64,000 nucleotides of DNA from Epithemia pelagica (taxonomy: Eukaryota; Protista; Bacillariophyta), in contig OX337228.1 of the NCBI GenBank assembly GCA_946965045.2, positions 5,022,001-5,086,000 of the forward strand, in the 5' to 3' direction. Position numbers and translations under genes: made by a program. This document shows positions 4,195 to 48,969 of the stretch, piece after piece; the stretch's first letter is position 1; each line of letters begins with the position of its first letter. The notes beneath the pieces are model-generated. The model was not told the DNA's origin. It did no database searches and saw nothing but the letters and a program-made list of their open reading frames with translations.

Positions 4195-5074
4195 TAGACG
4201 GTTTGGCGCACGAGTCACGCCAGAAATTCTGAGTCACGACCATGTTGACTTTTTTCAATTTTAAGCAGCGGAATCGATAGAGCTCGACGAGCTCTATCTG
4301 CTGATAATCTTTGTTTTGAAAAAGATCAACACCCGGTCGAGTTATTCAGGATTTTCTGGATTTCTGGATTCTGGCAAATATCATCTGGTCTACCTGACAC
4401 TTTGGCACCGCGATAGCCCGCGCTAATTTGGACCAAAATGTTTTATACGGGCTATCACGTGAATTGACACGTAACTTCTCACTATAACACTAATTAATCG
4501 GATTTCTCCCCTATTCATTGTCTTTCATGTCCTTCATGGCTTTCTCAATAGACAGGATCAAGTTCTTCTTGTTCATACTGCTGGTTCCCTTGGAGTCGAG
4601 ATAGATGCCAGTCCTTCTGGACAAGACACAGCGAGAATGTCAACAGTGGTTCCTGCGTGTATCATCAGGTCTGTGTGATGATAATGATACTGTTGGAGCT
4701 GAAGGTAGCATGTTGACAACAATGAAGTTGTTGGGTACACACTATGCATTCATGTTACCTTGATGGATGCTGACTTTGTCATTGTCGTTTCTTGCTAGAC
4801 TGCACCAAATCTGATCGAGACTGTGTGTGGGCAGGTAGCTGAGTTAGACTACCAATTTAAACTTTCCTTCATCCATTTGGCGCCAAAAACACATTTTGAA
4901 GTGCCCAATCGATAGATCTCGTTCTGGGCTTTTGAATGACACCTCAAATTCCAAAATTGGTTAAGTAGAAGTCAAGTTATAAATTGTCAAAGTTTTCTAC
5001 GGTGGCATCGCGGTGACCCCAGAATTCCGCCCACCAAATTTAGTCAGGCTGCCAAATTAGTCAGGTTGCTTCTA
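4195..5074 (-). mobile_element. Non-autonomous TIR DNA transposon (MITE-like), copy 1; left TIR damaged
   Basis: Reverse complement of 39733-40619, with only a few substitutions and two indels seen. The right end GTCAGGTTGCTTCTA is at 5060-5074. The left end reads TAGACGG instead of TAGAAGCAACCTGACGG (10-bp deletion). TA is present at both ends. Confidence 0.9.
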
Positions 5075-5672
5075 CTTGTAATACTGGTACGAGTAAAAGG
5101 TGAGATAGAGATCGTTTCGTTCTATTTCCACCACAGTGTTACTTTCATCAGTATAATGGAGAATGAAGTATATGAATTTGTGTACATCGAACCCAATGGA
5201 TGATTATCCTTATCCCTAATACAATATTGACTTTTCTTGGGATCGTTCTCTGCGCGTGCTGGACAGCGGACGCGGACTGGCGGAGTAGTCGTTAGAGTAC
5301 AATATCGTCTATAGTCGTACTTTGTTCCTTCAAGATCTCGCTTGGGCATAAGTTTTCGTGGATGTTGCGCACCTTTCATCCCTCTTTCGATGGCACAACG
5401 CATCGAAATTCCAAAACCAAGGACCGCAGCATTGCAAGAACAAAAAGTGGAGCCATATCCTTTTGTGTGACGAGAGAGTCTTTCGTTCGGTTGAGAGTTT
5501 GTGTGGGTTGACCCAATTGGATCATAGGTCTTGAAGGAGTCTTCCTCTTCTTATCCCTGTCTACATCGTCCTAGAGGACAGCAGACGAGGTTGGAGGGAG
5601 ACTAGTGACGCTGGTGGGTGTGACAGTTGAGCCTCATTTCTTCGGTAAAGTCGAGAAACACGATCTAGAACG

Positions 5673-8600
5673 ATGCAGCCAGTCCAATACGTTGCGAAGC
5701 ATGCATTCCAGGGAGATATTGCCCAATCACAGCTGAGTCTCACTCCTGGAGCCACTGTCTTGGCTAAGCCGAATCAAACAGGTGCTTGGTGGTGGGGAAC
5801 CTGCAACGGACGGGACGGATGGTTTCCACCCACCTACGTGGCACCTGCGCCTCCGCAGCAACCCATGCCGGCCATATCCATGCAACAGCAGATGCAACAG
5901 GCCTCGTTTGCATCTTCGGTCCAACAGCAACAACGACCGGCCGCAACTTCGGCAATACCCAATGCCCATGGTCTTCCAACGGCAGCTGGATATAGTCAGG
6001 GCATGGCTCAGCCTCATCACCAGGCTAGCGTTGCAGCCTTTCAGCCCATTTCCAGTCAGCCACCACAACAGATGTATGCACCGCAGGATCCGTTTGCTGG
6101 ATTGTCCAACATGTCCTCGCAGCCGTCTGCCTCAAGTTCACCCTTGCCTTCCATGTCGGGTGGTGTCAGTCTTCCACCTCCCGAGGAACTTTCGGCTGTT
6201 CCTTCCTCTTTGTCCGTCGCAAGTGACCTGTCGCCTCCTAATGCCTCCGCTGCTTCTACAAATGCAGGGACTGCCCCATCGCGAATCAGTCCCAATCCTT
6301 CTCCCCGTGACCACCAGATGGGACCCAAAGCGGGTTCCAAATCAGGCAGTACGAAGTCTACCTATTCCGATTCCAAGAGCTCCAGTAGCCCCAAGACTTT
6401 TTCGACTACTCCACAGTCAGTATCCTCAAAGCCCCAAGCTTCGTCGTCGAAACAAGGGACAAAAGTGGTTTCTCCGTCCTCCAGTGCCTTTGAAGATGCC
6501 GAATCACGTTTTGCTGGCTCCGCAGTAGCTTCTGCAGAGGGTAAACCTCCTCAGGCTCCAAGTACCATTTCCAAGGAAGAAGACGATGCGCGGAGACTTC
6601 GTGCTCAAGAAGAATCCCGACAAAAGGCACAGATTCGGAAAGACAAAGCGGTATCACGTCAGCCAACAGATTTCTCTGACTCCTCAAGTGGTATCGGGTC
6701 AAGTGGGGTAACAATGACTGTCGAGTCGGAAGCTGCTAACACGATGAGTGACCAAACGCAAGCTCGGTTCAACCCATATGAGTTCCTGTCAGGATCTGGA
6801 AAGCTACCCGATCGAAAGTTTTCCCCTGTTTTTCGTGTTCCACCGTTTTGGGCCATGATGAACCTGAATACCTACATTCAGCAGAAACCAGTCCCCGAAG
6901 ACAAACTCAAGGAAAGAGCGTCCATGTATGAACAGCTGGCAAGAGCTTTGAGTTTCGTTGGATATGTTTGCGCAGAGACGAATGAAGCGTCAAGGTCAGG
7001 GAGAGGCCGGTATGCCAACAAGCGCGAGAATCCCCTCGCGTATATGGCTAACAATCATATGGCCTGCGAAGCCTGCATCAAACTCATCTCGTTGCTCCCT
7101 CATTCAGCGGGTGCATCCGGTCAAGTTTTGGATGGTCTCTTTATGAACTTTCTGAATGTGTTTGTTTCTTTAATGGAAAATGTCCAACCGAATCAGCAGC
7201 TGGTTCTACCAGGAGGATGGCAGCAACCGGAATACACTTACCTCTGTTTGTACGTTATTCGAAATTGTGGAAACAATAAGTGGAGTTTCACAATCTGTAA
7301 TACGGGCCGAGATGGTCTCCAGTACCATCCAGCCAGCTTTGACAACGAAACAGGCCGCGAGTTGAAGCAGCTCGCAATGACCATTTGGGACATTCCTGGT
7401 GAGCGTCTCATGGATTCCACGTTCTGGACATTGCTTTTCCGACTTCAGGTCTATCCATCACGAAAGAACAACGCAGCCTTTGTCTATACGAAGCTTTTAC
7501 CTGCTTTGAACTCAAGACCTCTTCGTTCGAACTTGGATCAAGGCCCGGCTGAATACCTTGAAGTTCCTGGAACCATTCCGGCACAATCATACCATCCATT
7601 GGCACTGCTTGCCCTCACGTCTTCACCAGCACCGGGCTGTCGGTCATCTAAGTATTCAACGTTGCTTGTGATGAAAGCCGCCGTGGATCTTACCTTTTGT
7701 GAGATTGAGAAGGCTACTTCGTCATCCATGGACCCCGAAGACACGCGTATTCTGAAATTGACAGGAAGAAACCTGGCAAATTTTGCTTCCACAATAAATC
7801 CAAATAGCGTCGGTGACAACAGCCTGGGGGCTTCGTTGTCGGACACCTGGGATTTACTGGACAATCTCTTGAAGAAGATAAACTTCTCAGCGTCGAAACC
7901 GGTTGATCAATATAACCATGGCCTTTCGGCCAATGCGCTGACCGACGACTTTGCAAAGGGTCAGATTGTGTCGCTCGCCACAGGGCCTGGATCGGCGGCA
8001 TTTCCCCTTTTCGGTCGACTTCGACGAGATAACTATGCGCAGACGACGAAGGGTTTGATGGGTGAACCTCGACAAGACCCGATCCTTATCCCAGCTGTTC
8101 TCACCGACGCTGAGCTTCCTCCAGTTGCCACAGACTTCATGACAGCTTCGTCTTACTTACAGAGGATCGCAGATGCATGCAGTTTGCTTCTCCAACAAAG
8201 AAGGCTTATCAAAAATTCACCGGCGTTTGCTGCATCAGCAGCACAGTATGCCCTTACCACAGTTCTTCCGATGCCCAATGCGGATCCCAAATATTGCTTT
8301 TGGCGAAAGAACAAAATGAGACGTGAAACACAGCTGAACTTATTGTTTCTTATCAGACGAGTTTGTCGTATCTACTCTGCGGCAACATCTCGCGTTCAAC
8401 AGTCTCGTGGCTTGATTGCCATAAGGTCTACAGCGTTTGCGTGTGCTGCTTGCGTAGCTGATGCAATTTGTCGTGTCGTTGCGACAGACGACCCGAGCAC
8501 ATTTGCACTTCACTTTTCAGGACAGTGCGAAGGACCAACACAGCCTTTCGGTATTGACGCAGGAGCATACGACACTCTTGGTGCAAATTTGCCCATGTAT

Positions 8601-11600
8601 GACCCCAACATGTGCTCTCTCCGATTTCAATGCCTTGACTACATGAGAGGATTGTCCATGAACATGGATGGAACCCAGAAGAGCACTATTTTCAATTTTG
8701 ATAAATCCCTGTCGCCGACACCGGGTGATTTGGTGTTGATTGATCAATTGGCCATTCAATTGGCTTTACAAAGACCATTCCCTAAAACCGAGGAATCCAT
8801 GATGACCTATGCGGCCAATCTCATTTCGGGTTGCAATGGATCTATCATTGAGGTGCTTCCAGAGTTTGAGTATTTCCGTGACATCGTTTTCCATTTCAAG
8901 CATGCTGTCTCGGGAAAAGCTCAGTCTGCAGAGGTACCTGACAGCCACACTTGGTTGGCTTCCGATGCTACACTCAAATGGGACTTGAGGCGAAAATCGA
9001 AGGAAGACCCTGTTTTGGTCTACCAAGTGACGGCATTCCAGGGTCATCCACAAGACTTCGTAGAACGAATAGCCCAACAGGAAACAAAATCAAAGAACCC
9101 TTTTGCGGGTTTTGTGGCCCTTTTCTCTTCAAAGACTGTGGTGGAGAGATCGCGTTTGTCATCTGCGGATCCCAGTACGGTTGTAAATTCCTGCGGTGAG
9201 AAATTCCAGAATAAACGAGCGAAGCCTGTATCTGTTAGAAACGAAGACGATGTTCTCCACTTGGACAACAAAGAGTTGCCAACTTTTGGGAATCTGTTGA
9301 CGCCATCAGATTCGGAGAGGTTCATTCAGTTCCTCACGGTCCCATACATTCGTATTCCTCTTATCCTTGACTTTTTCGCCAATGGTGACCCAACTCGTCT
9401 TTCTGCTCTGAGGACAAAATCACTACAGCTCATTGTTGACGCTGCACTCTTCGAGCCCGGGCGATGGAAACCAGCAGATTTCTTAGATTACATTGAGGAG
9501 GTCCCCGTCGTTGACTTTGAAAGGTTGGAAGCATTACTTGCAACTCCTCATGGAACGCTGTTTAATGAAATCGCGAAATCGCCGGATGTTCTAACGAGTT
9601 GTATCGTTAAAATATTGGAGCGTGCACTTGATATGGATGTTGGGCGGTACACGAGGAAGTCCTCTTCGGGTCCTTTGATTCTCTACGCTGTGCGACTCGC
9701 CGTTCGACTTGAAGGCTACATGAAATATGCTCTGGCAAAGTGCCGTCCAGGGAAACCCAGGCCTCGTGGCCTAGAGACGTTGGATAACATTAAAGTGGAA
9801 ACGGCACTTAAAAAGATTCGTGGAATGATTGACGCACAGGCAATCCCAACGCTGGAGTATTGGATTGATCCCTCGCGAACAAAAGATGTTGACATCGCTT
9901 GTCTTACACATGCTCATCTTTTGTACCTGTTCAAGAACTATGACTATGAGGATCTGGATTTCCGAGCCGTTTCGATCATAATGTCATCACAGGTGTTTTT
10001 GACCATCAACAATAGGTTCAGCAGCAAAGTGTACGATGATCTGCAAGACAACTCCAATCCCACCCACCCTCCACCGTCTATTCAAATTGCACAATCTGAG
10101 ATTTTTGATATCATTCAAAGCCACCGGTACAATGTCCTCCGTTTTATCAGAGAGAAATCCAAGGATGGCGACCTTGCAATGGAAGCCGTGGTTCGAATTG
10201 CGACTGGAACCGGAACTCGGGAGAACTCAGATATTGAATTGAAACAACGCCATTGGCAGAGTATTGGTCATCCCACTTGCTACGGAAGGTTTGTGCCTGA
10301 TACCGAGGATGAAAAACTTCGCGATGGGTCGTACCGGAAACCTGTGGAAGGCCAAACCTATGAGGAATGGATGCTACAGGTCACAACGAAGGCAGTTGGT
10401 ATTGAAGTTAATCTTCAACTGAGTGACTTTACTTTGCAAAACCACAAGATGGCATTGCTGGATCCCCAGATAATGGAAGATGCTGACTTCGCCGAAACCA
10501 GGCGGATTGCCTTGAAGGATGCATCGGATATTGCCTGTGCAGAAGTAATGCACACAACTAATCGCTACTGGTGGCGCCTAGTTGGAAGACGATATGATGT
10601 GCTTTCGTGGAGTCCTGATCAACGGAACTTCTATGACACCAAAGGAGCACGTAACCCGAATCATTCTCGCAAGTTTCCCGGAGGACTGCGTGGCGGGGAG
10701 AAGTGGATCGTTGATATATTGAAGGACAAGTTACCACTGATACTTCCTGAGGTCGATCTCTTTATTTCATCGAATGATCATTCGGATGAAGCTTTTGCCG
10801 TCCTGTCAGGCTGGCTACCAAACAAACGTAGTGACCACTCAATGCTCACTCATACTCTAAAGGAGGTGGTAGTGTGGCAGCATCCACCAGCCCTTTCTAT
10901 TTTCAACGTTGTAGAATATGGGCGCCGTCACATCCGAGTATTGGAGTACACGTCCAATCTATCGACATGTCTACACGAAGTCAGCAGTGGTGAACCTTAC
11001 CCCGACCGTGTTGCGGGTATCCTTTCTCTCTCCGCTGGTGTTCCCATGACCACAGTGACACCTTCGTCATCTCTTCTAGTATCGAGGGCCTTGTCTGCAG
11101 ATATCGGTGTTCAAACGTTCGTGCCCCCAAGATTCCTCGAGGGGCTAATCCCGACAGCTTTGGTTGAAAATTACGTTTTCTGGCAAAACGAAGACGATGA
11201 TATTGTCGGATATGAGAAGGAAACGAAGAGTCAAGAAGATGAGGAGAGCGACGAGAAGGACATCATTGACAATGCAGGCTCTTCACCAGATGATGACAGG
11301 CCTTGTACACGGCTACGAATCAAGCTCACCAAAGAGAGTTTCGACAAAACAGGCTTTTGTAATTCCTCGGCGGAAGCTCTTGTTCAGAGGATCCCAGTCA
11401 TTGGAACTGACCAGGAAGTTGAACGCATTGACTCAAACAGGACAACTCATGTGTTGCTTAACGTTATGACAGCACCTCCATCGTCGCTGTTGAAGAGAAT
11501 AGGGATGCTACTGGCTCGTTTGGACAACTTAGCTCACGTTCTAGTTTGGAGCACGGAGACCGTCAAGACGGCACATGGTGCAGCTTCGATTGACTTGATT

Positions 11601-26115: not shown

Positions 26116-26393
26116 GGGATTAAGTCAAATAGACTAGTTTTCGAATCATTGTAGAAATAGACCGTATACTCTAGAGGAGCAGGCCAACTACAGTTCGATC
26201 GCAAATGGCAGCTCCTTTATCACATGATACTCCTCGTAACCTTAGAACATACTCCTAAGACCTAGGCTGCTTATCCAAGCACATAGGTAGCCTCCTTTTG
26301 AGGTGATGTCATCTTATATGCGACCTATCCGCGATGGACATTTTTCGTATCGGGGTTTCTTTTCTTGACAAAAATCTTGCCCCCTACAGAACA

Positions 26394-29190
26394 ATGGCGA
26401 CGCACATCTGCGTCTTGAAGCATTTGTCGGCCTATCGTCGCCATGAACTCAAGAATGCTTCCGATGGTCACAGGTGGATCTCGATTCACCTGAATGGGCT
26501 TCAAAGATGGTTTTCTCGATCCTCATCATCCTCAGATTTCCCTCCTTTCAATGGTCATGACCATCGCCGACGCAACCATGGACCTGGCCCGAGAAGAGAA
26601 CCATGGAGACCTCGCTATCCCCCGAGAGCTGACCAGGAAAACGCACAGAATCATGAAAGGAAGCCAGTAAACTCTAGATCCGCCCAGCGCATTCGTCTGC
26701 TGGATGAACTCGACAATGTACTCTCCAAGAGAAGTCATCGCCAGAAAAAAGCACCAAGGAAGGAGTCTTCTGCCACTGTAAATATAAATCCTCGACCAAC
26801 AAGACCACCGATTTCTTTCCAGAGAGGAAACGAAATGCGAAACTTCCCGGGCCTCTCTTCAGACAGCAATCATCAAACCAGTGACCATGAAAATGTGGTT
26901 TCGTCGCCTGACAACGATTCACCTCGAGCCTCAACAACCGTGTCGAATGCAGCGAGTGCACCCCTGTCACAAGTACTACCGGTGTCTTCGGATAATGTAG
27001 CGTTGGATGACATCTTTGGTATTCCAAGCCGACCATCTGCAGATAGTCCGTCGCAAGAGAACGACGAACAATCACACTACAAAGAGTACATGGAAATATT
27101 AGATCGTTATGTGGCAACCAGTGTTAAGCTAAAGGCAATCAAGGACGACAAGCTAGCTCCTCTTCTCGCTTACCTGAAGCAACAAGGTAAGTTCCTCTTT
27201 GAAACAATGAACCAATGCCATTGGTCCATTCTCATCTTCTCTCTCTTGAGCAGACCCCGTCATTCCCACTGAGTACCCGCAGTTTGGTTCTACCATTGCC
27301 TCTTGCGGCGCTCTCTCTTCGTCGCAGATGCTAGTCAATACCGAAGACTGCGAACCACATAATATTGAGTTATCTGAGCAAGTGAACAAACAGAAAGAAG
27401 CTTTCAAGGAAAAAATGGGTTTTGACCCAAAGCAGATGAGTATTGTCGCGGGACTATTGAACTTTATGGGGGGACAGTGCGCTCGATATGCCAAAATTGG
27501 ACCGTTGAAATTAACATGGCAAAAAGTTCTTGAATCTGGTTTTGTGGATAAGAATATACTTCATCCGTTGATACACATGGCAGCCACCGTGTCAATTGAG
27601 AAAAAGAGATCTTCAGGGTCTGGAACCACGCTATCAATATTGGACGTACTCGACGGTGTTGATGTTTCAAAAGGTGAACAAACTGAGGCGAAAGAAGAAA
27701 AAACTTCGAGTGAAGGCGATGTTGAGGATGATGATGATGTGTCCAAGATACTCGACGAAATGGCTACGTTTCATGACTTATTGTATGAACCCACCGAGCA
27801 GACTGTACATGTACGTGTGCGACTGCTGGTAAGCCGTGGCGAAGGGAAAGCTGCAGAAAAGCTGTTACGCGAAAGCAAGACAACATTGCGTTTGCGAGTT
27901 TTCACTCCTGTTCTATCACTTTTGCTCCAACAAAAAGACTTTAAGTCTGCCTTTTCGCTCTACCAACGCATGCATGCTATTGATTCTGTCATACTTGATG
28001 CGGACAGCTATATAACGTTGATTTCTGGCTTGGCAGAGCATGGATGTTTCAACAATGATGCACCGGCGGTTCCAGGTGCCGCCGAGGTGGGTTATTCTGC
28101 TTCAGGTCCTTCCTTGTTTGACGAACTAGTTGGCGAAATGGCCGAAGAATTTTCTGAAATCACCATTACGTCTGCACGGCGCCTCTATAATTCACTGGCG
28201 AAAGGCTTATCGGACAACTCATCTTTGAAACCAGTCGGTACGCTGGAATCACTTGCAATCAACAACACCCATGCATTAGATGACTCTAGTGCGATCGCTG
28301 GTAGAGTCATTATTGATAGTCAGACTGGCGTTTGTCCTCGAACCGGTGTGAAGCTCCACTTGAAGCATTTGACTGATGGTCAGAAAGAATCATTGAAGAA
28401 GGGATGCAAAACTCTTGCACTAGAACGACAAGAAAGCTGGTCATACAAGGCCACCACGATGGCTGATGAGAATCTCGACAGCTTCCTCGACTGGATCGAT
28501 TCAAGGCATGGTGAACCCTTTACAGCGATTGTGGATGGCGCTAATGTGGGATACTACATGCAGAACTATGATGGTGGTCAGTTTAACTATCACCAAATTG
28601 ACTTTGTTGTTCGGTCATTGGAGATGAGGGGAGAGAATCCTCTCGTAATTCTTCCTTTCAAGTACACACGTGATGTATTCACTGGTTCCACCAACAATAG
28701 GAGACAGTTTCTCACGGACGAGGACCACCACATTCTCCAGAATCTCCGTGACGGTGGAAAGTTGTTTGTCGTCAACTCAGGACTCTTGGATGATTTCTAC
28801 TGGATCCTAGCCAGCGTGGCGAAGCAGACGACATCCTCCGGTGGACGTGATCTCACAGTTCCGTTTGACGATTCCTCACGCTGGCCTGGAATGCGACCAG
28901 TGCTCATTACGAATGACCAAGTCAGGGACCACAAACTGGGGATGCTTGAACCTATGCCATTCAAGCGTTGGAATTCCAACGTTATTGTCAATTACAACTT
29001 TGCGCCATATGCGGGCACACAGCGAATGGGCCGTGGCATTGGCTTCAGTCCAATCGCTTTCTACAGTCGTGAAATTCAGTGCAACAGAAACGAGAATGCG
29101 ACCGGTGCAAGTGTTTGGCACTTTCCGCTCTGCGACAGTACCGATGAATGGTTTTGCGTGCGACTTCCGCAGCGTGCGGATTCGAACTGA
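26394..29190 (+). CDS. PRORP: Protein-only RNase P (PRORP) paralogue A, probable mitochondrial presequence (~909 aa)
   Basis: Exons 26394-27186 and 27254-29190, intron 27187-27253 ending at a GAGCAG tandem acceptor. PPR-like helices, then NYN metallonuclease motifs IVDGANV, DDFYW, ITNDQVRDH, REIQ, WHFP. The N-terminus is Arg/Ser-rich with QRWFS. An upstream in-frame ATG exists at 26334. Confidence 0.92.
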
Positions 29191-29191
29191 G

Positions 29192-31291
29192 TTACTCGTT
29201 TGATGCAGTTGAGATGCAGAGCCGCCACGGTTCATCCCAACCAGTAACTGGAAAGTGCCACACACGGTGGCCGGCATTTTCTGGTCTATCATTCGATTGA
29301 ATCTCCCTTGAAAATGTACTTGGTGGGAACAGTGTCAAGTTGCGCCCACTCTCCCATTCGCTATGTCTATAGCTTCCTATAGAGAAATTGACAATCTGAC
29401 AGGTTGTCCATCTCCGAAAAGGCCGAGCTTCGAGAAGTGCCAACCTGTGGTCTCGCATCTGGTCATTCGTAATTATAATAGGTCTTTGTCCTGGAATCCT
29501 CTCTTCATCGGTTTTTGCCCCTGAACTGGTCAGATTTGTTACACTCGCAATCATCCAAAAATAATCATCAAAGCAGTAACGCGGTACAATGTACATCAAA
29601 CCACGCTCTTTGAGATCCTCCAAAGCTTGGATATCTTTGTCGTTAAGTTCTTGTACCATACGAATATGGCGAAGATAAAACTTTTTTGTGGTATATTTTG
29701 ATGGCATGACGACCAGTGGTTGCTCTCCCAAACGAATCAGCTCTTCCGCCATTAGCTTTACCTGGCTGTACTGTACAGTCCCGGAACCAAAGTGCGCAAC
29801 ATTGGCGCCATCCACAATCGCTGTAAATGATCGATCTTTAAGCCAGTTGGAAAAGTTTTGTAATTCGGTTCGGCAATATTCCCCTGTCGGTGGGTCTACT
29901 TTCGCGTTCTTTGTCTTGGCCGTAGCGCGGTACTCTTCTTGAGAGGAAAAGGCCATTTCGAGCAAGGTTTCCCTCACGTGCCTTTTTTGCGGTTCATCCA
30001 AGGTCAATGAGCGAAGTTTCACTCCTGTTGCATTACAGACACCGGATGTCTCGTTGATGTGGACACGGCCAAATGTGACACCCCCAGTGGTTGTTGAACA
30101 CATTGGTATCAGAGATTCTCTCTCCTCGACACCACTGGATGTGGATGAGCCTTCGTGCAAATCTCCAAAACCACTGTACAGAGTTTCAGCGGCACTTTCC
30201 GTCAACTCCAGTAAATCCGTTGCCATGAACCCAGCAATATCGTCGAAAAGCTGCGGGCCCGAAGAAAGGGATCCCACTTGTAAAGCTCCAGTGGCTTCCT
30301 TTGAAAGGTATCCTTTGGATGCCAGCGAGCTGAGCAACAGCGCATAGGTGGCAGCATCCAGATGTACGGTGTTGAGTTCGCGCATTCGCAGAAACAGACG
30401 CAACGCGGACTCCATGCTTCCAATCTCGTTACAATAGTATGAGAGAATTGGCGTGTAAGTGCGCAGTTTGGACGAGTCGTCCGTAAAAGAAAGCGATTCG
30501 ACCAACTTTTCTGCTTCCAATGGTTTTTCCTGGGATATTAAGGACTGAATGCGCAAGGTAGTTGTTCTCTCATTGGGGAGAAAAAGAAGAGTATGCATCG
30601 CAACAACGTCCCACAAGCATTCCTTGCAGATTTCGTCGTCACCCATCAAGCCTAGAACGTACATGTAAGTGCTAACACTATTCTCACGAGGTATGCTACC
30701 CATGAGTCGCCACTTGAGCCAAGCTGCAATGAGCGGTCCAACAGTCCGAGTTGAGGCACAACGATCACCAATGTAAGTCAAGCACCGATCCATGTATTGT
30801 TTTTGAGGTTTTGTCAGGTTCAATGCCCTCAAAAGGGACGTATGTCTTTCATTCATCTCAGATCGAAAGTCGTTCCTGTCACTCTCTTCGTGTTGATAGT
30901 TTTCAGCATCGAGGATCTTCTCAATAGGCAATGTTAATGTTGGATCCAACAGGAAACTTTGGACCGGTTCAACATTAGAACACTTTTTCAGAACACGAGG
31001 TTCCACCATTATCTGTGACATGATCTCAACATATTCGTTCCAGTAATGATGATCGCAAAGCGAGATGTTGCTTGTCTCTGGGCTCCATGGACTACCACTG
31101 CCCAAGGAGGAAGAATTGGGTAATGACACGCCCAAGGGAGATGGTTTCTCTATGGATACCATCCGTAATGGACCTGAACAATCATATGGTTTCGGCTCCG
31201 ATGTCTTGAATACTTTTGGAAAATGAAAGAGAAAGCCATCAATGAACTGAAGCGGAAGAACAATATAGACAAAAAGTGGTGCGTTCTTCAT
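29192..31291 (-). CDS. PRORP: Protein-only RNase P (PRORP) paralogue B, probable bipartite plastid leader (~699 aa)
   Basis: Intronless ORF with PPR-like repeats (YTPILSYYC, ATYALLLSSLA) and NYN motifs IVDGANV, DDYFW, ITNDQMRDH, REIQ, WHFP. The ORF-track start is TTG; the real ATGs are at 31309 and 31291, giving MKNAPLFVYIVLPLQFIDG-FLFH. Confidence 0.92.
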   Translation of the reverse strand: MKNAPLFVYIVLPLQFIDGFLFHFPKVFKTSEPKPYDCSGPLRMVSIEKPSPLGVSLPNSSSLGSGSPWSPETSNISLCDHHYWNEYVEIMSQIMVEPRVLKKCSNVEPVQSFLLDPTLTLPIEKILDAENYQHEESDRNDFRSEMNERHTSLLRALNLTKPQKQYMDRCLTYIGDRCASTRTVGPLIAAWLKWRLMGSIPRENSVSTYMYVLGLMGDDEICKECLWDVVAMHTLLFLPNERTTTLRIQSLISQEKPLEAEKLVESLSFTDDSSKLRTYTPILSYYCNEIGSMESALRLFLRMRELNTVHLDAATYALLLSSLASKGYLSKEATGALQVGSLSSGPQLFDDIAGFMATDLLELTESAAETLYSGFGDLHEGSSTSSGVEERESLIPMCSTTTGGVTFGRVHINETSGVCNATGVKLRSLTLDEPQKRHVRETLLEMAFSSQEEYRATAKTKNAKVDPPTGEYCRTELQNFSNWLKDRSFTAIVDGANVAHFGSGTVQYSQVKLMAEELIRLGEQPLVVMPSKYTTKKFYLRHIRMVQELNDKDIQALEDLKERGLMYIVPRYCFDDYFWMIASVTNLTSSGAKTDEERIPGQRPIIITNDQMRDHRLALLEARPFRRWTTCQIVNFSIGSYRHSEWESGRNLTLFPPSTFSREIQSNDRPENAGHRVWHFPVTGWDEPWRLCISTASNE

Positions 31292-31515
31292 GATCTCTTC
31301 ATTTTTCATGGCCACGCCATGTTCCGATCCACTACCTACAAGGAGGCCCCCAGCATCTGGGTTCTGATTCTGAGGGTGTAGTTTCTGCGGCCCCCAAAGA
31401 CTTAAGCCATAAATCTGCTCTATCAACTAGGAGTATCAACATGATGTGGAAACCCCTATTTCATTTTTATGCCTATCCGTATCCGAATAATCATTACTCC
31501 AATCCTAACCATAGA

Positions 31516-35456: not shown

Positions 35457-36873
35457 CTAATCGGTAAAGCTAACGACCAATTTCACGGGCATATCACCCA
35501 GCACTGGATCGGTCACCACAAGCTCCTCTCCATCATCAATTAAGACAGACAGAGCTCTTTTGAGGTTCGGTCGTGTAGCTTTCTCTAGAGCTTGTGGTCG
35601 CGGCATGTACAGAGTCTTGCCACTACCACTTACCAAGCTGGGTCCGCCAAGCCTCAAATTGCCATCTTTCAATCGTTGAATGAGTTCTGTCAACGTTGCC
35701 GATTTCGACATTTCGAGTTTTTGTACCGAGGAGCTACAAACTGGACAATTGGCCTCTTGTTCATAGGCAAATGTGTGAGAATGCAGTCCTTCTGTTCCCA
35801 TGTACATCATATACGAGTTCATGTTTTGAGAGCCAAACGTCAAGTATTTCACGGCCTCATTCACACATGCCGCCGCAATAATGGCATCTGAGAACAACAC
35901 ACCATTCTCTGTGGGTCAGAAGCGAGTGCAAAACCATTGAGTCGAACGACGAACACTTACTTGTACTGGCCACGGCAGGAATGATATTCTTCACCACACC
36001 CAATGTCATCATGTAGGTGACCCCATCAATGTTGAATCGATCAGCACGAGCTTTCGCCTGTTCGTAGACCCACGTCATATCCTCTGGTGAGTCTTTATCC
36101 AACTTTTTACCAGGGAACTCTTTCGGCCACTGAAGGATCGAGGCATATGCAATACAATGTTCCGGTCGACGAGGTGTTTCAGCAATGGTGCATAATGGAA
36201 ACGACGTTTGCGGGGGGAACGAACCGATTGTACATTCAAAGCAACTTGTGATGCGAGGTAAAATGAAACGTGCTTGTCCCGAAAATGCTTCAGTTCCACC
36301 GTCCATGATAGGAATGATAGTCGACGGGTCCATATCGCCATCGTCGTCAAACTCCACCAATCCAACTACGGTAGAATTAAGCCATCGACGAGCTTCCACA
36401 TTGTCGAGACCGGATATAATGCAGTTGAACGATTTGTAGAAAGAGGAGTCCTTGTCTTGGATCATTCCGTGATGGGCCGTAACATTCATCCATGGGCATC
36501 TCTCGTTGATAAACCGTGCTGCTGTTTCGGCTTTTGAGGAACCGACGTCCTTTTGTCGAAACAAGAACTGTCGATTCAAGTTGGTCACATCAATTGTATC
36601 AAGATCAATCACGTCCACTTGTCTAATCCCAGACATAGCGAGATCTTTGAGGATTTCACATCCCAAACCACCTGCACCCACCACCAAAACGCGGGATTTC
36701 GCCAGTGGCGAATCGAACATGGCCGCTGGAGTGGCCCCAAGCTTGGGAGGAGCAATAGGTTCGAATTCGCCACATGCCAGCGGCCCAGTCTCATTTGCAA
36801 ACGGTGATGGCCGACTCAACAACGTTAGTAGAGTTGCTCGAGCAGGTGGTACAGAACTAGGCTGCTTCGCCAT
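35457..36873 (-). CDS. UBA3: NEDD8-activating enzyme E1 catalytic subunit (~447 aa)
   Basis: Exons 36873-35961 and 35887-35457. Motifs: [31 protein letters not shown], catalytic [16 protein letters not shown], and [14 protein letters not shown] restored across the intron. Confidence 0.96.
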
Positions 36874-37453
36874 GTCAATCTCCTTTGTGAGATGACAGAG
36901 ACAGATGAACAAACGTGAAATGAATGTCAGGCGCCATAAGGAAAAGGAGGAGAATTTCGCGTAATCACACTACAAATCAGCTTACCATGGCTGTCGCTTG
37001 GTTTTCTACGGCTGCCATTTTGTTCAGTGAACGTTTGACCATTGCCGACCTATCAATGAATCAATCTCGACAGATTGTGGACGGAGCAGAACAGAATTGC
37101 GAGAGTTGATGCGAGAGACAAAAATGAAAGGAATGGACTGGAAAGGCGACTGCAAAATCTACCTTAGCTATGTATTGAAGGACCTCAGACTCAGACCTCC
37201 TATTTCCTCTGGCAATAGTTAGGAGTATGAGTTGAGAATTTTCGTCCTCCTCTCACTTCTTACTGAAATAATGAGTTGGTAGAGGATGGAATATTGAATC
37301 ATGCATTGACCATTGTTCTTCATATGCTCGCCCTTTCGTCAAATTCGCTGCAGAAATATAAAGGGTTCATAGCGGGGTGATGGAAGATATCAAGGAGAAA
37401 AACTAAACCGTTTTATTAATTCTACCAACCAAGCCAAACAGTCTTTAGGACAC

Positions 37454-38044
37454 TTACACACCAGGGATGATGTTAACACCAAGTTGTTCGTGGACCATCA
37501 AACCAAGGATACCCATCATAGCGGCGCGGCCGTTATTGAGCTCGACGGCACGCTTTTGGAGCTTGGTGGCTTCGTCGAAGGAGTCCCAGCCGAAGTCAAG
37601 GTAGTCGTTACGGAAGTCACCGGGGAATTCTCCACCAGTGATGTCCTTCATGACGGCAATTTCCAAGAAACCGATGAAGGCGATGATTTGAGCCAAACCA
37701 GCAGAAGGGATGGCACTAAGGGCAGCGAAACCGTTGGGGATATCAGTGAAAGGAGTTCCGGCAAGGTCGATGTCTCCTCCCCAACGCCATCCGGCTTCAC
37801 AAGAAAGGTAGCCGGCAACGGCTAGCATTGCAATACGGCCGTGCTTCACTTCGACGTAACGAAGGCGGTTGAACTTGGCCTCATCACCATCGGCAACGAG
37901 TCCGAGAGGATCATAGAAATTGAGAGGGGGCTGGGCGCCGAGTTCGTTCTCGAAAGCCTGCAAGGCGGAAGACGAAGCCTTTTGGGAGACAGGGGCAAAA
38001 GCACCAACGGTGGCAAGGAGGGTGGCAAATACGGCGGACTTCAT
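37454..38044 (-). CDS. LHCF: Fucoxanthin-chlorophyll a/c binding protein (Lhcf type), 196 aa
   Basis: Signal peptide ending VGA-FAP; motifs DPLGL, EVKHGRIAMLA, ELNNGRAAMMG. Confidence 0.97.
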   Translation of the reverse strand: MKSAVFATLLATVGAFAPVSQKASSSALQAFENELGAQPPLNFYDPLGLVADGDEAKFNRLRYVEVKHGRIAMLAVAGYLSCEAGWRWGGDIDLAGTPFTDIPNGFAALSAIPSAGLAQIIAFIGFLEIAVMKDITGGEFPGDFRNDYLDFGWDSFDEATKLQKRAVELNNGRAAMMGILGLMVHEQLGVNIIPGV

Positions 38045-46669: not shown

Positions 46670-47551
46670 CTAGGAGAATGTGTTCTGTCTACGCCGCATT
46701 TCTCGAGCTTGTTCTTTGGCTTGATCCGTAAATGGCAAATGTGGGATGGTTCGTTCCGTGACCTCAGCGTTAAACCGTCGAAGTATCACACTCCGTTGAA
46801 CGGCAAAAAGCCACATTATATCCAGAAGACGATCATCTCCTTGACTGAGTTGCCAAGCAGCCCAGAACACTGCTTCGGCGGACGACAAACAACCTGGACC
46901 CGAATTGTGCCAGCGCCAGTAATGGCTGTCAGACGGAGGATTGTCCAGGTGGACCATGGGCAGCGATAGACGATCCAGCAAGCGCGTGCAGTTCTTCCAC
47001 CGACAGTCTAGTACCACCAATCGTAAATTTTTGTGTTCTAAGCCGTTGATTGAAGATAGTGGGACCGATTTCTCTCCTGGAAATAAAGCATATGTTTCCA
47101 TAGGACTTCCTGCCTCGATGTGTTGTTCTTTGTAATTAGGAATGCCATCTTCCCCGTCTTGGTCCCATATTCTGACGACCGATTGACCATTTTGCGTTCG
47201 GATGTTTTTCAACAGAGTGGCAAGTTGTACCCCTGTGGAAGCGGCACGTCGATCATCGAGAATAATGTCCAGTTGAAAAGGCAATGCATCCCACTGGTGA
47301 TTCAGCGTTGGTGGCGGCCATTCCTTCTCCGGGATCAAAAGTCTACAACAGTCAAAGCAGTAAATGTGGCGCGAGGCGTTGCATCGTGGACAATTTTGAC
47401 GGGGCCATTCCGTCTCTCGGTAGAGAGCTTCAATTCGCTTCAAGTAATCCGTCAAAACATTCGGTCTTGTTGTCTCAGATAACAATGGAGAAGGTTCATC
47501 GTTGTTTTTTTCTCCAATGTTATGTGAACAATGAGTGGTGGACGATGACAT
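46670..47551 (-). CDS. DTW-domain protein (tRNA-uridine aminocarboxypropyltransferase family, DTWD1-like), ~293 aa
   Basis: CPRC...YCFDC zinc motif, LFPG, VVLDCRW (in place of DxTW), YWRWH...LSSAEAVFW. First ATG at 47551. Confidence 0.8.
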   Translation of the reverse strand: MSSSTTHCSHNIGEKNNDEPSPLLSETTRPNVLTDYLKRIEALYRETEWPRQNCPRCNASRHIYCFDCCRLLIPEKEWPPPTLNHQWDALPFQLDIILDDRRAASTGVQLATLLKNIRTQNGQSVVRIWDQDGEDGIPNYKEQHIEAGSPMETYALFPGEKSVPLSSINGLEHKNLRLVVLDCRWKNCTRLLDRLSLPMVHLDNPPSDSHYWRWHNSGPGCLSSAEAVFWAAWQLSQGDDRLLDIMWLFAVQRSVILRRFNAEVTERTIPHLPFTDQAKEQAREMRRRQNTFS

Positions 47552-47828
47552 TGACAATTGACAGAGATAAATGTGTGGGGCGGAAAAAATGGCCGGCTTA
47601 CGGATATGCGGTCTGTGCGCTGTCTGTCTGTGTCTGGAACACCACCGATATTTGTATCTTAGGAACAAAAATCGTCTGTGGGCTAGGTGCTAGGTGGCGA
47701 AAGAACTGGTCGCGCGCCAGCAGTCCGGTAGAGAACATGACCGCGACCTGCAAGACTAAATAGAAATCGCATTCAATACACGACGGCTAAGTAATCAGCA
47801 AGGACACGTGTGAGTCACCGGCTAGGCC

Positions 47829-48484: not shown

Positions 48485-48597
48485 AAACCATTTTACCCAT
48501 CGGGATTGGGGCTGACCCGAAAAATGAACCTTGGCTTCAGATATCGGTGGTGTTCCTGGGTCTGGGTTTTGGCGCCTGATCCCAAGTCGTCTTCACC

Positions 48598-48969
48598 ATG
48601 GAACACGCTAGTGACCAGAAAAATACAGATGTTCAGAATACATACCTTGCCAACTATTCTGAGTTGCTTGTCCGAGCAACGCCTCCCATCACCGATCCCC
48701 GAGAACTCGAAACTATCCTTCACTTTAGCCTACGAGGGCTATGGGGAGAGTTGGAGACGCACAGCGTCTCTCTCAGTGTTCACAGAACGAATATTGGTGC
48801 GAAAGATCAGGCACAAAATACCAACGACAAAATCCAGGAACCGATTCTCAAAGTGGTTTGCCGTCAAGACTCTGCTGAAGCTGTCAGAGCAGCCCTAACA
48901 TGGACCACTTTACCACCCTACATGGAACGAATGCAGTACAGACTGGATGTTGTGTCAGTTGAGGATTAG
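48598..48969 (+). CDS. Small protein resembling the Pop8/Rpp14/Pop5 family of RNase P/MRP subunits (123 aa)
   Basis: Pattern Y..LLV......D...L...L..SL..LWG....H...L.V...ILKVVCRQDSAEAVRAALT matches my recollection of Pop8/Rpp14; the size also fits. Confidence 0.55.
   Translation: MEHASDQKNTDVQNTYLANYSELLVRATPPITDPRELETILHFSLRGLWGELETHSVSLSVHRTNIGAKDQAQNTNDKIQEPILKVVCRQDSAEAVRAALTWTTLPPYMERMQYRLDVVSVED

Follow-up and report, generated by a model that had tools for sequence, protein, structure and literature searches.

The window analysed here, 64,000 nucleotides (nt) of the diatom Epithemia pelagica (contig OX337228.1 of assembly GCA_946965045.2, positions 5,022,001 to 5,086,000 of the forward strand), contains two genes for protein-only RNase P (PRORP) lying tail to tail, with 1 nt between their stop codons. 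The genes, referred to as PRORP-A and PRORP-B, are best explained as two functional, ancient paralogues inherited as a convergent unit, of which B is predicted to serve the plastid and A the mitochondrion (probability about 0.8). All positions below are counted from the first letter of the window.

The Junction Between the Two Genes

The bases at 29180-29200 read ...AAC TGA g TTA CTC... (from 29179, ...GAT TCG AAC TGA g TTA CTC GTT...). The PRORP-A stop codon TGA occupies 29188-29190 on the plus strand and closes an open reading frame (ORF) of 620 amino acids (27328..29190), and the PRORP-B stop codon TAA, seen as TTA on the plus strand, occupies 29194-29192 and closes the minus-strand ORF 31426..29192. 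The single G at 29191 is the entire “intergenic” space between both stops, as the first-pass annotation of this DNA had read it. The four other convergent pairs of long ORFs in the window are separated by 162-251 nt from stop to stop, and the PRORP pair is unusually tight compared with them. No conserved element, hairpin or Rfam family was detected at the junction; a shared terminator hairpin and a hidden non-coding RNA or tRNA were looked for there, and neither was detected.

Conservation of the Convergent Pair in Diatoms

Word-based protein searches returned relatives from diatoms only, save for one protein of the cryptophyte Guillardia and one short protein, both distant. The closest relatives, from an ENA assembly and from Epithemia clementina, share 56-59% identity with the window proteins. 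A second, convergent PRORP gene is present on the contigs of the window, L001, Epithemia L002 (locus tags of the Epithemia pair, ACA910_017001 and ACA910_017002), L004, Fistulifera solaris L005, L006/7, L009/10 and L012-14, and a degenerate-pattern scan of JGI metagenome contigs supplied 80 further loci. In 94 loci, every PRORP gene was assigned to a type by tblastn, with 16 A and 16 B proteins as reference panels, and its stop codon was located. Scores against the own type were about 1.1-5 times those against the other type, the margin being slim in a few divergent metagenome loci.

After removal of near-duplicates there are 19 sequence-distinct paired loci (the window, L001, L002, L004, L005, L006, L009, L012 and 11 metagenome loci), although some are closely related and the independent lineages are fewer, perhaps about 14. 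Each consists of one A and one B gene, tail to tail without exception. The stop-to-stop gaps are 1, 1, 6, 12, 17, 23, 24, 27, 38, 38, 45, 58, 59, 70, 71, 85, 101, 101 and 102 nt (median 38), and the spacing of 1 nt is therefore not itself conserved. The genes around the pair differ from one group to another. Adaptin-beta and Spt5 flank it in the three closest genomes, and elsewhere the flanks are Gaa1/CesT, MFS/prefoldin, PIG-P or M13 peptidase/FBPase. In the pennate clades, among genes with enough flanking sequence, 14 of 15 A genes and all 14 B genes are paired; the sole exception is Mayamaea, which has no second PRORP within 8 kilobases (kb). The pair is also present, with a 38-nt gap, in a non-pennate lineage (L012-14, L035) whose A gene groups with P0039/L076 and whose B gene groups with L066.

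One centric-type locus, L030 (JGI Ga0213868_10003706, 4433-11517), a relative of the P0054 group, has B and A in convergent orientation at a distance of 4.3 kb; a Tudor/Agenet gene and a gene for a Tgs1-like cap guanine-N2 methyltransferase separate them, and the locus looks like a loosened or intermediate state of the pair. Within the flank available, no partner was found for the Thalassiosirales A genes (8 kb on each side in Thalassiosira profunda) or for several centric-type B genes. A profile word search with the B-clade alignment returned no new proteins, and Phaeodactylum and T. pseudonana are thus unplaced. A ThiF/E2_bind gene of the NEDD8-activating type stands a few kb from the pair both in the window (about 35857-38044, corresponding to L003 1446-2862) and in L012 (15519-16901), on opposite sides; this shared neighbour is possibly a remnant of a wider ancestral synteny combined with an inversion.

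Phylogeny and Age of the Duplication

Two trees were computed, one of 59 rows under LG+C20 with posterior mean site frequencies (PMSF) and one of 94 rows under LG+G4, both as quick searches with Shimodaira-Hasegawa approximate likelihood ratio (SH-aLRT) support only. The B clade is recovered in both (its core with support 97 in the 59-row tree, the clade with 100 in the 94-row tree) and contains all B partners from the paired loci together with transcripts of Attheya, Asterionellopsis and Entomoneis. The A sequences include a pennate A clade (support 96) besides those of Thalassiosirales, Attheya, Striatella and others. All of them together make up a single clade (86) in the 59-row tree; in the 94-row tree they do not, and the outgroup root is placed within them. 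Between A and B lie Coscinodiscus, Proboscia and a few further sequences. Since both A and B include pennate and centric members, the duplication that separated them must be ancient. In the usual diatom species tree the radial centrics stand at the root. If the PRORP tree is rooted with these centrics, A and B would go back to a single duplication in the ancestor shared by polar centrics and pennates.

Wherever they are supported, the subtrees of A and B match each other, grouping the window with L001 and L002, L004 with L006, and L026 with L064 and L062, as expected if the pair is inherited as a unit. By parsimony, five changes in pairing are required over the whole tree. We favour an ancestral pair with repeated loss, because the formation of a tail-to-tail A/B arrangement within 40 nt on two occasions is far less likely than breakage and because L030 resembles an intermediate. 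The phylogeny with synteny, proposed as a check in the first-pass annotation, places A and B in two diatom-wide clades, whose genes are linked in nearly all pennates and in one non-pennate lineage. The same annotation had described an old inverted duplication kept in proximity; its age and the linkage stand (two diatom-wide clades, 19 loci), and an inverted origin in situ is the parsimonious reading of them.

Gene Models and Transcript Cover

Four public runs (X1, X2, X3 and X4) contain the DNA of the locus, and their contigs were compared with the window. X1 and X3 have longest contigs of more than 400 kb, and their contigs at the locus retain the PRORP-A intron, so that these runs look like DNA assemblies; X4, whose kind is not on record, has a contig here that also retains the intron. 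One 4004-nt contig of X2 (27294-31297) spans both PRORP genes, and another skips exactly the 67 nt of the intron. X2 cover is zero over both flanking intergenic stretches (26200-26376 and 31298-31441), and PRORP-A and PRORP-B are covered at similar contig depth. The spliced contig and the intergenic holes in cover indicate that X2 is probably an RNA run. If it is, both genes are transcribed, with read cover that continues across the junction, and the silent copy that would have spoken against the first-pass description was not encountered.

PRORP-A has two exons. The first (26394..27186, plus strand) is defined by its ORF and by the donor CAAG/GTAAGT at 27186/27187, and it encodes a basic, Ser/Arg-rich N-terminal extension with a presequence-like start (MATHICVLKHLSAYRRH...). 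This exon has no Pfam domain match; the A gene of the Epithemia relative matches residues 102-269 (tblastn). The ORF opens upstream at 26334, and the start at the ATG at 26394 is consistent with X2 cover, which opens 12 nt upstream at 26382. The intron (27187..27253, plus strand, GT..AG) ends at the only acceptor that preserves the frame (27253/27254), and the joined exons give a stop-free translation of 909 residues. The second exon (27254..29190, plus strand) encodes the PPR repeats, the central domain and the NYN nuclease, recognised by Pfam PRORP and by PDB sequence matches. In X1, X3 and X4, loose contig ends flank 27284-27323, at the start of this exon, and the assembly of 26500-27300 is fragmented into many short contigs. 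These loose ends and fragments probably reflect a divergent second haplotype with an insertion or deletion in the low-complexity N-terminal region.

PRORP-B is a single exon (29192..31309, minus strand) defined by its ORF and a Pfam PRORP match, with its first ATG at 31309. A second ATG at 31291 is the likelier start, because the L001 orthologue (MKCAPFYLVF...) starts at the matching position and because the X2 contig reaches only slightly past this ATG, to 31297. Translation from this ATG begins MKNAPLFVYIVLPLQFIDG/FLF..., where the slash marks the predicted cleavage site discussed below.

Protein Family, Active Site and Fold

Both proteins match the Pfam family PRORP (PF16953) above its curated cut-off of 39.1 bits, with 53 bits for A and 57.3 bits for B, and both have weaker Pfam matches to PPR and Zc3h12a-NYN. 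The PPR domain is matched by PPR_long and PPR_2 at E 2e-5 to 3e-4, under the Pfam cut-offs, and PRORP-B additionally matches designer-PPR entries of the PDB at E 1e-14. In HMMER comparisons with PDB sequences, both proteins match Arabidopsis thaliana PRORP2 (AtPRORP2; 5diz, 5ft9) and PRORP1 (AtPRORP1; 4g23), with E 2.9e-15 for PRORP-A against 5diz. The two proteins share 31% identity over 615 residues (BLASTP, E 5e-86), in agreement with their earlier description as clearly diverged. The blocks noted as common to both can be found again (SGPSLFDE/SGPQLFDD, GVCxxTGVKL, PFKRW/PFRRW, SREIQ and VWHFP), except that the pattern FxSREIQ does not quite fit B, which reads TFSREIQ; its SREIQ part is present in both.

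The catalytic residues are conserved in both proteins. The Asp of IVDGAN, the two Asp of DDFYW/DDYFW (DD(F/Y)(Y/F)W), the Asp and His of TNDQVRDH/TNDQMRDH (TNDQ(V/M)RDH) and the histidine of WHFP align in register with AtPRORP2 and AtPRORP1, which agrees with the statement that both copies keep all the NYN aspartates. The conserved AtPRORP1 aspartates used for this comparison were D399, D474, D475 and D493, with residue roles taken from the literature, in which D399, D475 and D493 are the metal ligands (PMC10941002). The aspartate motifs are conserved across 60 family members, and catalytic motifs are intact in every complete row of a 62-row family alignment, a few rows having single substitutions beside the aspartates.

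An AlphaFold2 model of PRORP-B, built from a 15-sequence alignment, has a mean predicted local distance difference test score (pLDDT) of 75 and a disordered N-terminal segment of 81 residues. Its best matches among PDB folds are AtPRORP2 (5diz), AtPRORP1 (4g23) and human MRPP3 (7onu_E), over 540-570 columns and with template modelling (TM) scores of 0.61-0.65 by target; against the PPR domain of PRORP1 (6lvr) the TM score is 0.70 by target. Judged from sequence, both proteins are full-length, catalytically complete PRORPs, and both would be expected to remove the 5' leader of precursor tRNAs (pre-tRNAs). In the proposed mechanism the PPR domain would hold the tRNA elbow, the central domain would act as connector, and the NYN metallonuclease would cut the 5' leader off the pre-tRNA.

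The diatom enzymes differ from those of other lineages in the zinc-binding central domain. The CxxC motif, at 28432-28443 in A and 29939-29950 in B according to the family alignment, has become Cxx(T/S) in every diatom PRORP sampled, including A, B and the basal centric types. It is intact outside diatoms (CLSC in AtPRORP2, CSVC in Guillardia; both Arabidopsis PRORP1 and PRORP2 have CxxC). Window A and B retain the first Cys, the His of WHFP and the C-terminal Cys, with Thr in the place of the second Cys of CxxC. In the Thalassiosirales A proteins, in that of L012 and in P0039, Val takes the position of the C-terminal Cys ligand. The central domain of diatom PRORPs may bind zinc differently or not at all.

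Two further features of the sequences were recorded. A-type and radial-centric PRORPs have a common N-terminal extension with a conserved acidic motif (SFFDEVDE in centrics, LLDELDNVL in window A); B lacks this extension, for which there is no Pfam match. The 29 nt that encode FTAIVDGANV, with the first catalytic Asp, form an inverted repeat between PRORP-A (28519..28547, plus strand) and PRORP-B (29799..29827, minus strand) in which 28 of 29 positions are identical. In this tract 8 of 10 codons are identical in the window; in ten other lineages, the two genes of a pair agree at 0-4 of 5-10 same-residue codons. It may be a short gene-conversion tract between inverted copies, or it may be chance. 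Large-scale gene conversion between A and B was rejected, as no second near-identical tract was detected and other lineages do not show this one.

Predicted Compartments of the Two Enzymes

Stromal plastid proteins of diatoms are marked by a bipartite signal of the ASAFAP type, in which a signal peptide precedes a hydroxylated transit peptide poor in acidic residues and the Phe at +1 is critical (PMC4329603). B orthologues with credible starts have the hydrophobic core of a signal peptide, followed by a small-x-small cleavage site with Phe at +1. The sites are AQA/FNFP in Entomoneis, AAA/FLP in L012, IHS/FSP in Fistulifera, VSA/FS in Attheya, LTA/FV in Asterionellopsis, VSA/FVP in P0015, VRA/FS in L006, FLA/FEP in L001 and IDG/FLF in the window, where the N-terminus reads MKNAPLFVYIVLPLQFIDG/FLFHFPK.... 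PRORP-B is most likely a plastid protein, and with its signal peptide and ASAFAP-type site it would be directed to the plastid and process tRNAs there.

The N-termini of the A proteins are of a different kind. Most lack a hydrophobic stretch: of the 18 listed, 15 have a maximum 12-residue hydropathy under 1 (window A, 0.9), and the value reaches 1.7 in Attheya and in one gene call of L014. Among their first 30 residues, complete A models carry 4-9 basic and 0-3 acidic ones, with starts rich in R, K and S, and their K/R clusters would also fit nuclear signals. PRORP-A, with its basic presequence-like extension, is predicted to be most likely mitochondrial and possibly also nuclear. PRORPs seem to have taken the place of the ribonucleoprotein form of RNase P in all compartments of stramenopiles (PMC10941002). 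Only two PRORP types per diatom were found in the searches, which for Epithemia, for example, yielded just the two adjacent genes. If diatoms possess neither an RNA-based RNase P nor a third PRORP, A would have to serve the nucleus too.

Candidate Pop8-like subunits of RNase P/MRP in the window, the ORFs at 48506-48969 (plus strand), have no Pfam match and so offer no support for an RNase P/MRP protein subunit at this place. The neighbouring ORF at 46670-47668 (minus strand) is a DTW-domain protein (33.8 bits, cut-off 33.7).

Explanations for the Linkage and Weight of the Evidence

The coding regions end 1-102 nt apart in the 19 paired loci, and the 3' untranslated regions must therefore run into the coding sequence of the partner. 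This overlap can be read in two ways. The first is that the linkage is passive: the pair descends from an ancestral inverted duplicate, the overlapping 3' ends leave no harmless breakpoint, and proximity has no regulatory role. We put this at even odds. The variable gap and the lack of any detected conserved junction element, hairpin or Rfam family agree with it, as do the several lineages that lost the linkage yet kept the genes, and L030 accommodates two unrelated genes between A and B. Passive linkage fits less easily with a pair that stays intact in nearly all pennates despite repeated reshuffling of its flanks, and with a spacing much tighter than that of the other convergent neighbours in the window.

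The second way is functional coupling, in which the convergent 3' overlap, through interference, antisense transcripts or small RNAs derived from double-stranded RNA, would balance or alternate plastid and mitochondrial/nuclear RNase P and would be selected. The closeness of the stops in all 19 loci, with transcripts that must overlap the coding sequence of the partner, the unbroken X2 contig through both genes and the retention of the pair while its flanks change all fit such coupling. However, a contig that spans two genes does not by itself demonstrate overlapping transcripts, and the linkage has been lost in Thalassiosirales and Mayamaea. We regard functional coupling as possible but doubtful. 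A bolder version, in which the near-zero spacing has been a selected device coupling the dosage of plastid and mitochondrial/nuclear RNase P since before the pennate radiation, and in which the loss of the second zinc Cys marks a diatom-specific, possibly zinc-independent central domain, seems unlikely.

It is very improbable that one of the two copies is decaying, catalytically dead or unexpressed. The change of the zinc motif from CxxC to CxxT in both copies could suggest a dead enzyme, but this change is common to all diatom PRORPs; the ORFs and catalytic residues are intact across many lineages, and the probable RNA run has contigs over A and B alike. That two unrelated PRORP genes became neighbours by chance, or that the duplication is recent and confined to one lineage, deserves hardly any weight: compact genomes do place genes close together, but the two genes are not unlinked in related genomes, being convergent at 19 distinct loci with differing flanks, and they share only 31% identity and belong to separate diatom-wide clades.

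Several points weigh against the reading of two functional, anciently duplicated genes that are inherited together and divided between organelles. Very long branches lead to the outgroups (Guillardia and one more), which makes the root of the diatom PRORPs unreliable, and when parsimony with equal weights is applied to the B tree alone, two gains of pairing stand against three losses, so that gains are cheaper. The linkage is dispensable, since 8 kb of flank in Thalassiosira profunda and in Mayamaea, and 1.5-5 kb at about 20 other loci, contain no partner gene. The library type of X2 is not on record, and its contigs are blind to strand, transcript ends and expression level. The N-termini were compared by motif and hydropathy only, several of those from metagenomes being unreliable gene calls, and both the compartments and the enzymatic activity are predictions. 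Finally, the second Cys of CxxC is absent in all diatom PRORPs, so that their central domain is possibly unlike that of the plant enzymes.

Comparison with Known Systems

The closest well-described systems are the PRORPs of Arabidopsis, with the organellar PRORP1 and the nuclear PRORP2 and PRORP3 (4g23, 5diz, 5ft9). They are like the diatom pair in their three-part architecture, catalytic aspartates and WHFP histidine, and their paralogues are split between compartments, as predicted for the diatom pair. However, identity in the structural alignment is about 18%, and the duplication in diatoms arose independently and is specific to them. Thr or Ser replaces the second Cys of CxxC in diatoms, and the predicted plastid copy has the bipartite signal of a secondary plastid. 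Plant PRORP paralogues are not known to be physically paired. In Trypanosoma brucei, two single-polypeptide PRORPs cover all RNase P activity, with PRORP1 nuclear and PRORP2 mitochondrial (PMC10941002). Unlike diatoms, Trypanosoma has no plastid; its duplication was a separate one, and a tail-to-tail arrangement is not reported there (PMC10941002). Human MRPP3 (7onu chain E) matches the fold of PRORP-B over about 540 columns (TM 0.63 by target) and has the same NYN active site, but it requires the partners MRPP1/2.

The arrangement can also be compared with conserved convergent genes and natural antisense 3' overlaps in other compact eukaryotic genomes, which likewise combine a 3' overlap and microsynteny with surroundings that move. 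The diatom partners differ from these in being paralogues of one essential enzyme, predicted for different organelles. The literature consulted, mostly outside subscription journals, contained no description of diatom PRORP paralogues, their targeting, arrangement or altered zinc motif, or of such a linked pair; on stramenopiles it says only that PRORPs occur there and seem to have displaced the RNA enzyme. PRORP paralogues split between compartments are known from Arabidopsis, Physcomitrium and Trypanosoma (PMC10941002), and the diatom pair is an independent case of compartment-split PRORPs, its enzymes being new members of a known family and not a new kind of system. It differs from the known cases in the physical linkage of the two 3' ends over much of diatom diversity, the family-wide change in the zinc motif and the secondary-plastid signal on the predicted plastid copy.

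Among proteins that have taken over from a ribozyme, PRORP is the textbook example. The red-algal ancestor of the diatom plastid used an RNA-based RNase P. The plastid-type copy would serve a plastid derived from a red alga, and the proposed division of labour between the two enzymes is open to direct testing. The family-wide change at the zinc site bears on what the PRORP central domain requires. Paralogues of one essential enzyme that have been 3'-coupled across a large part of diatom evolution are a rare sort of gene pair and provide a natural test of whether such an overlap is functional or simply hard to break.

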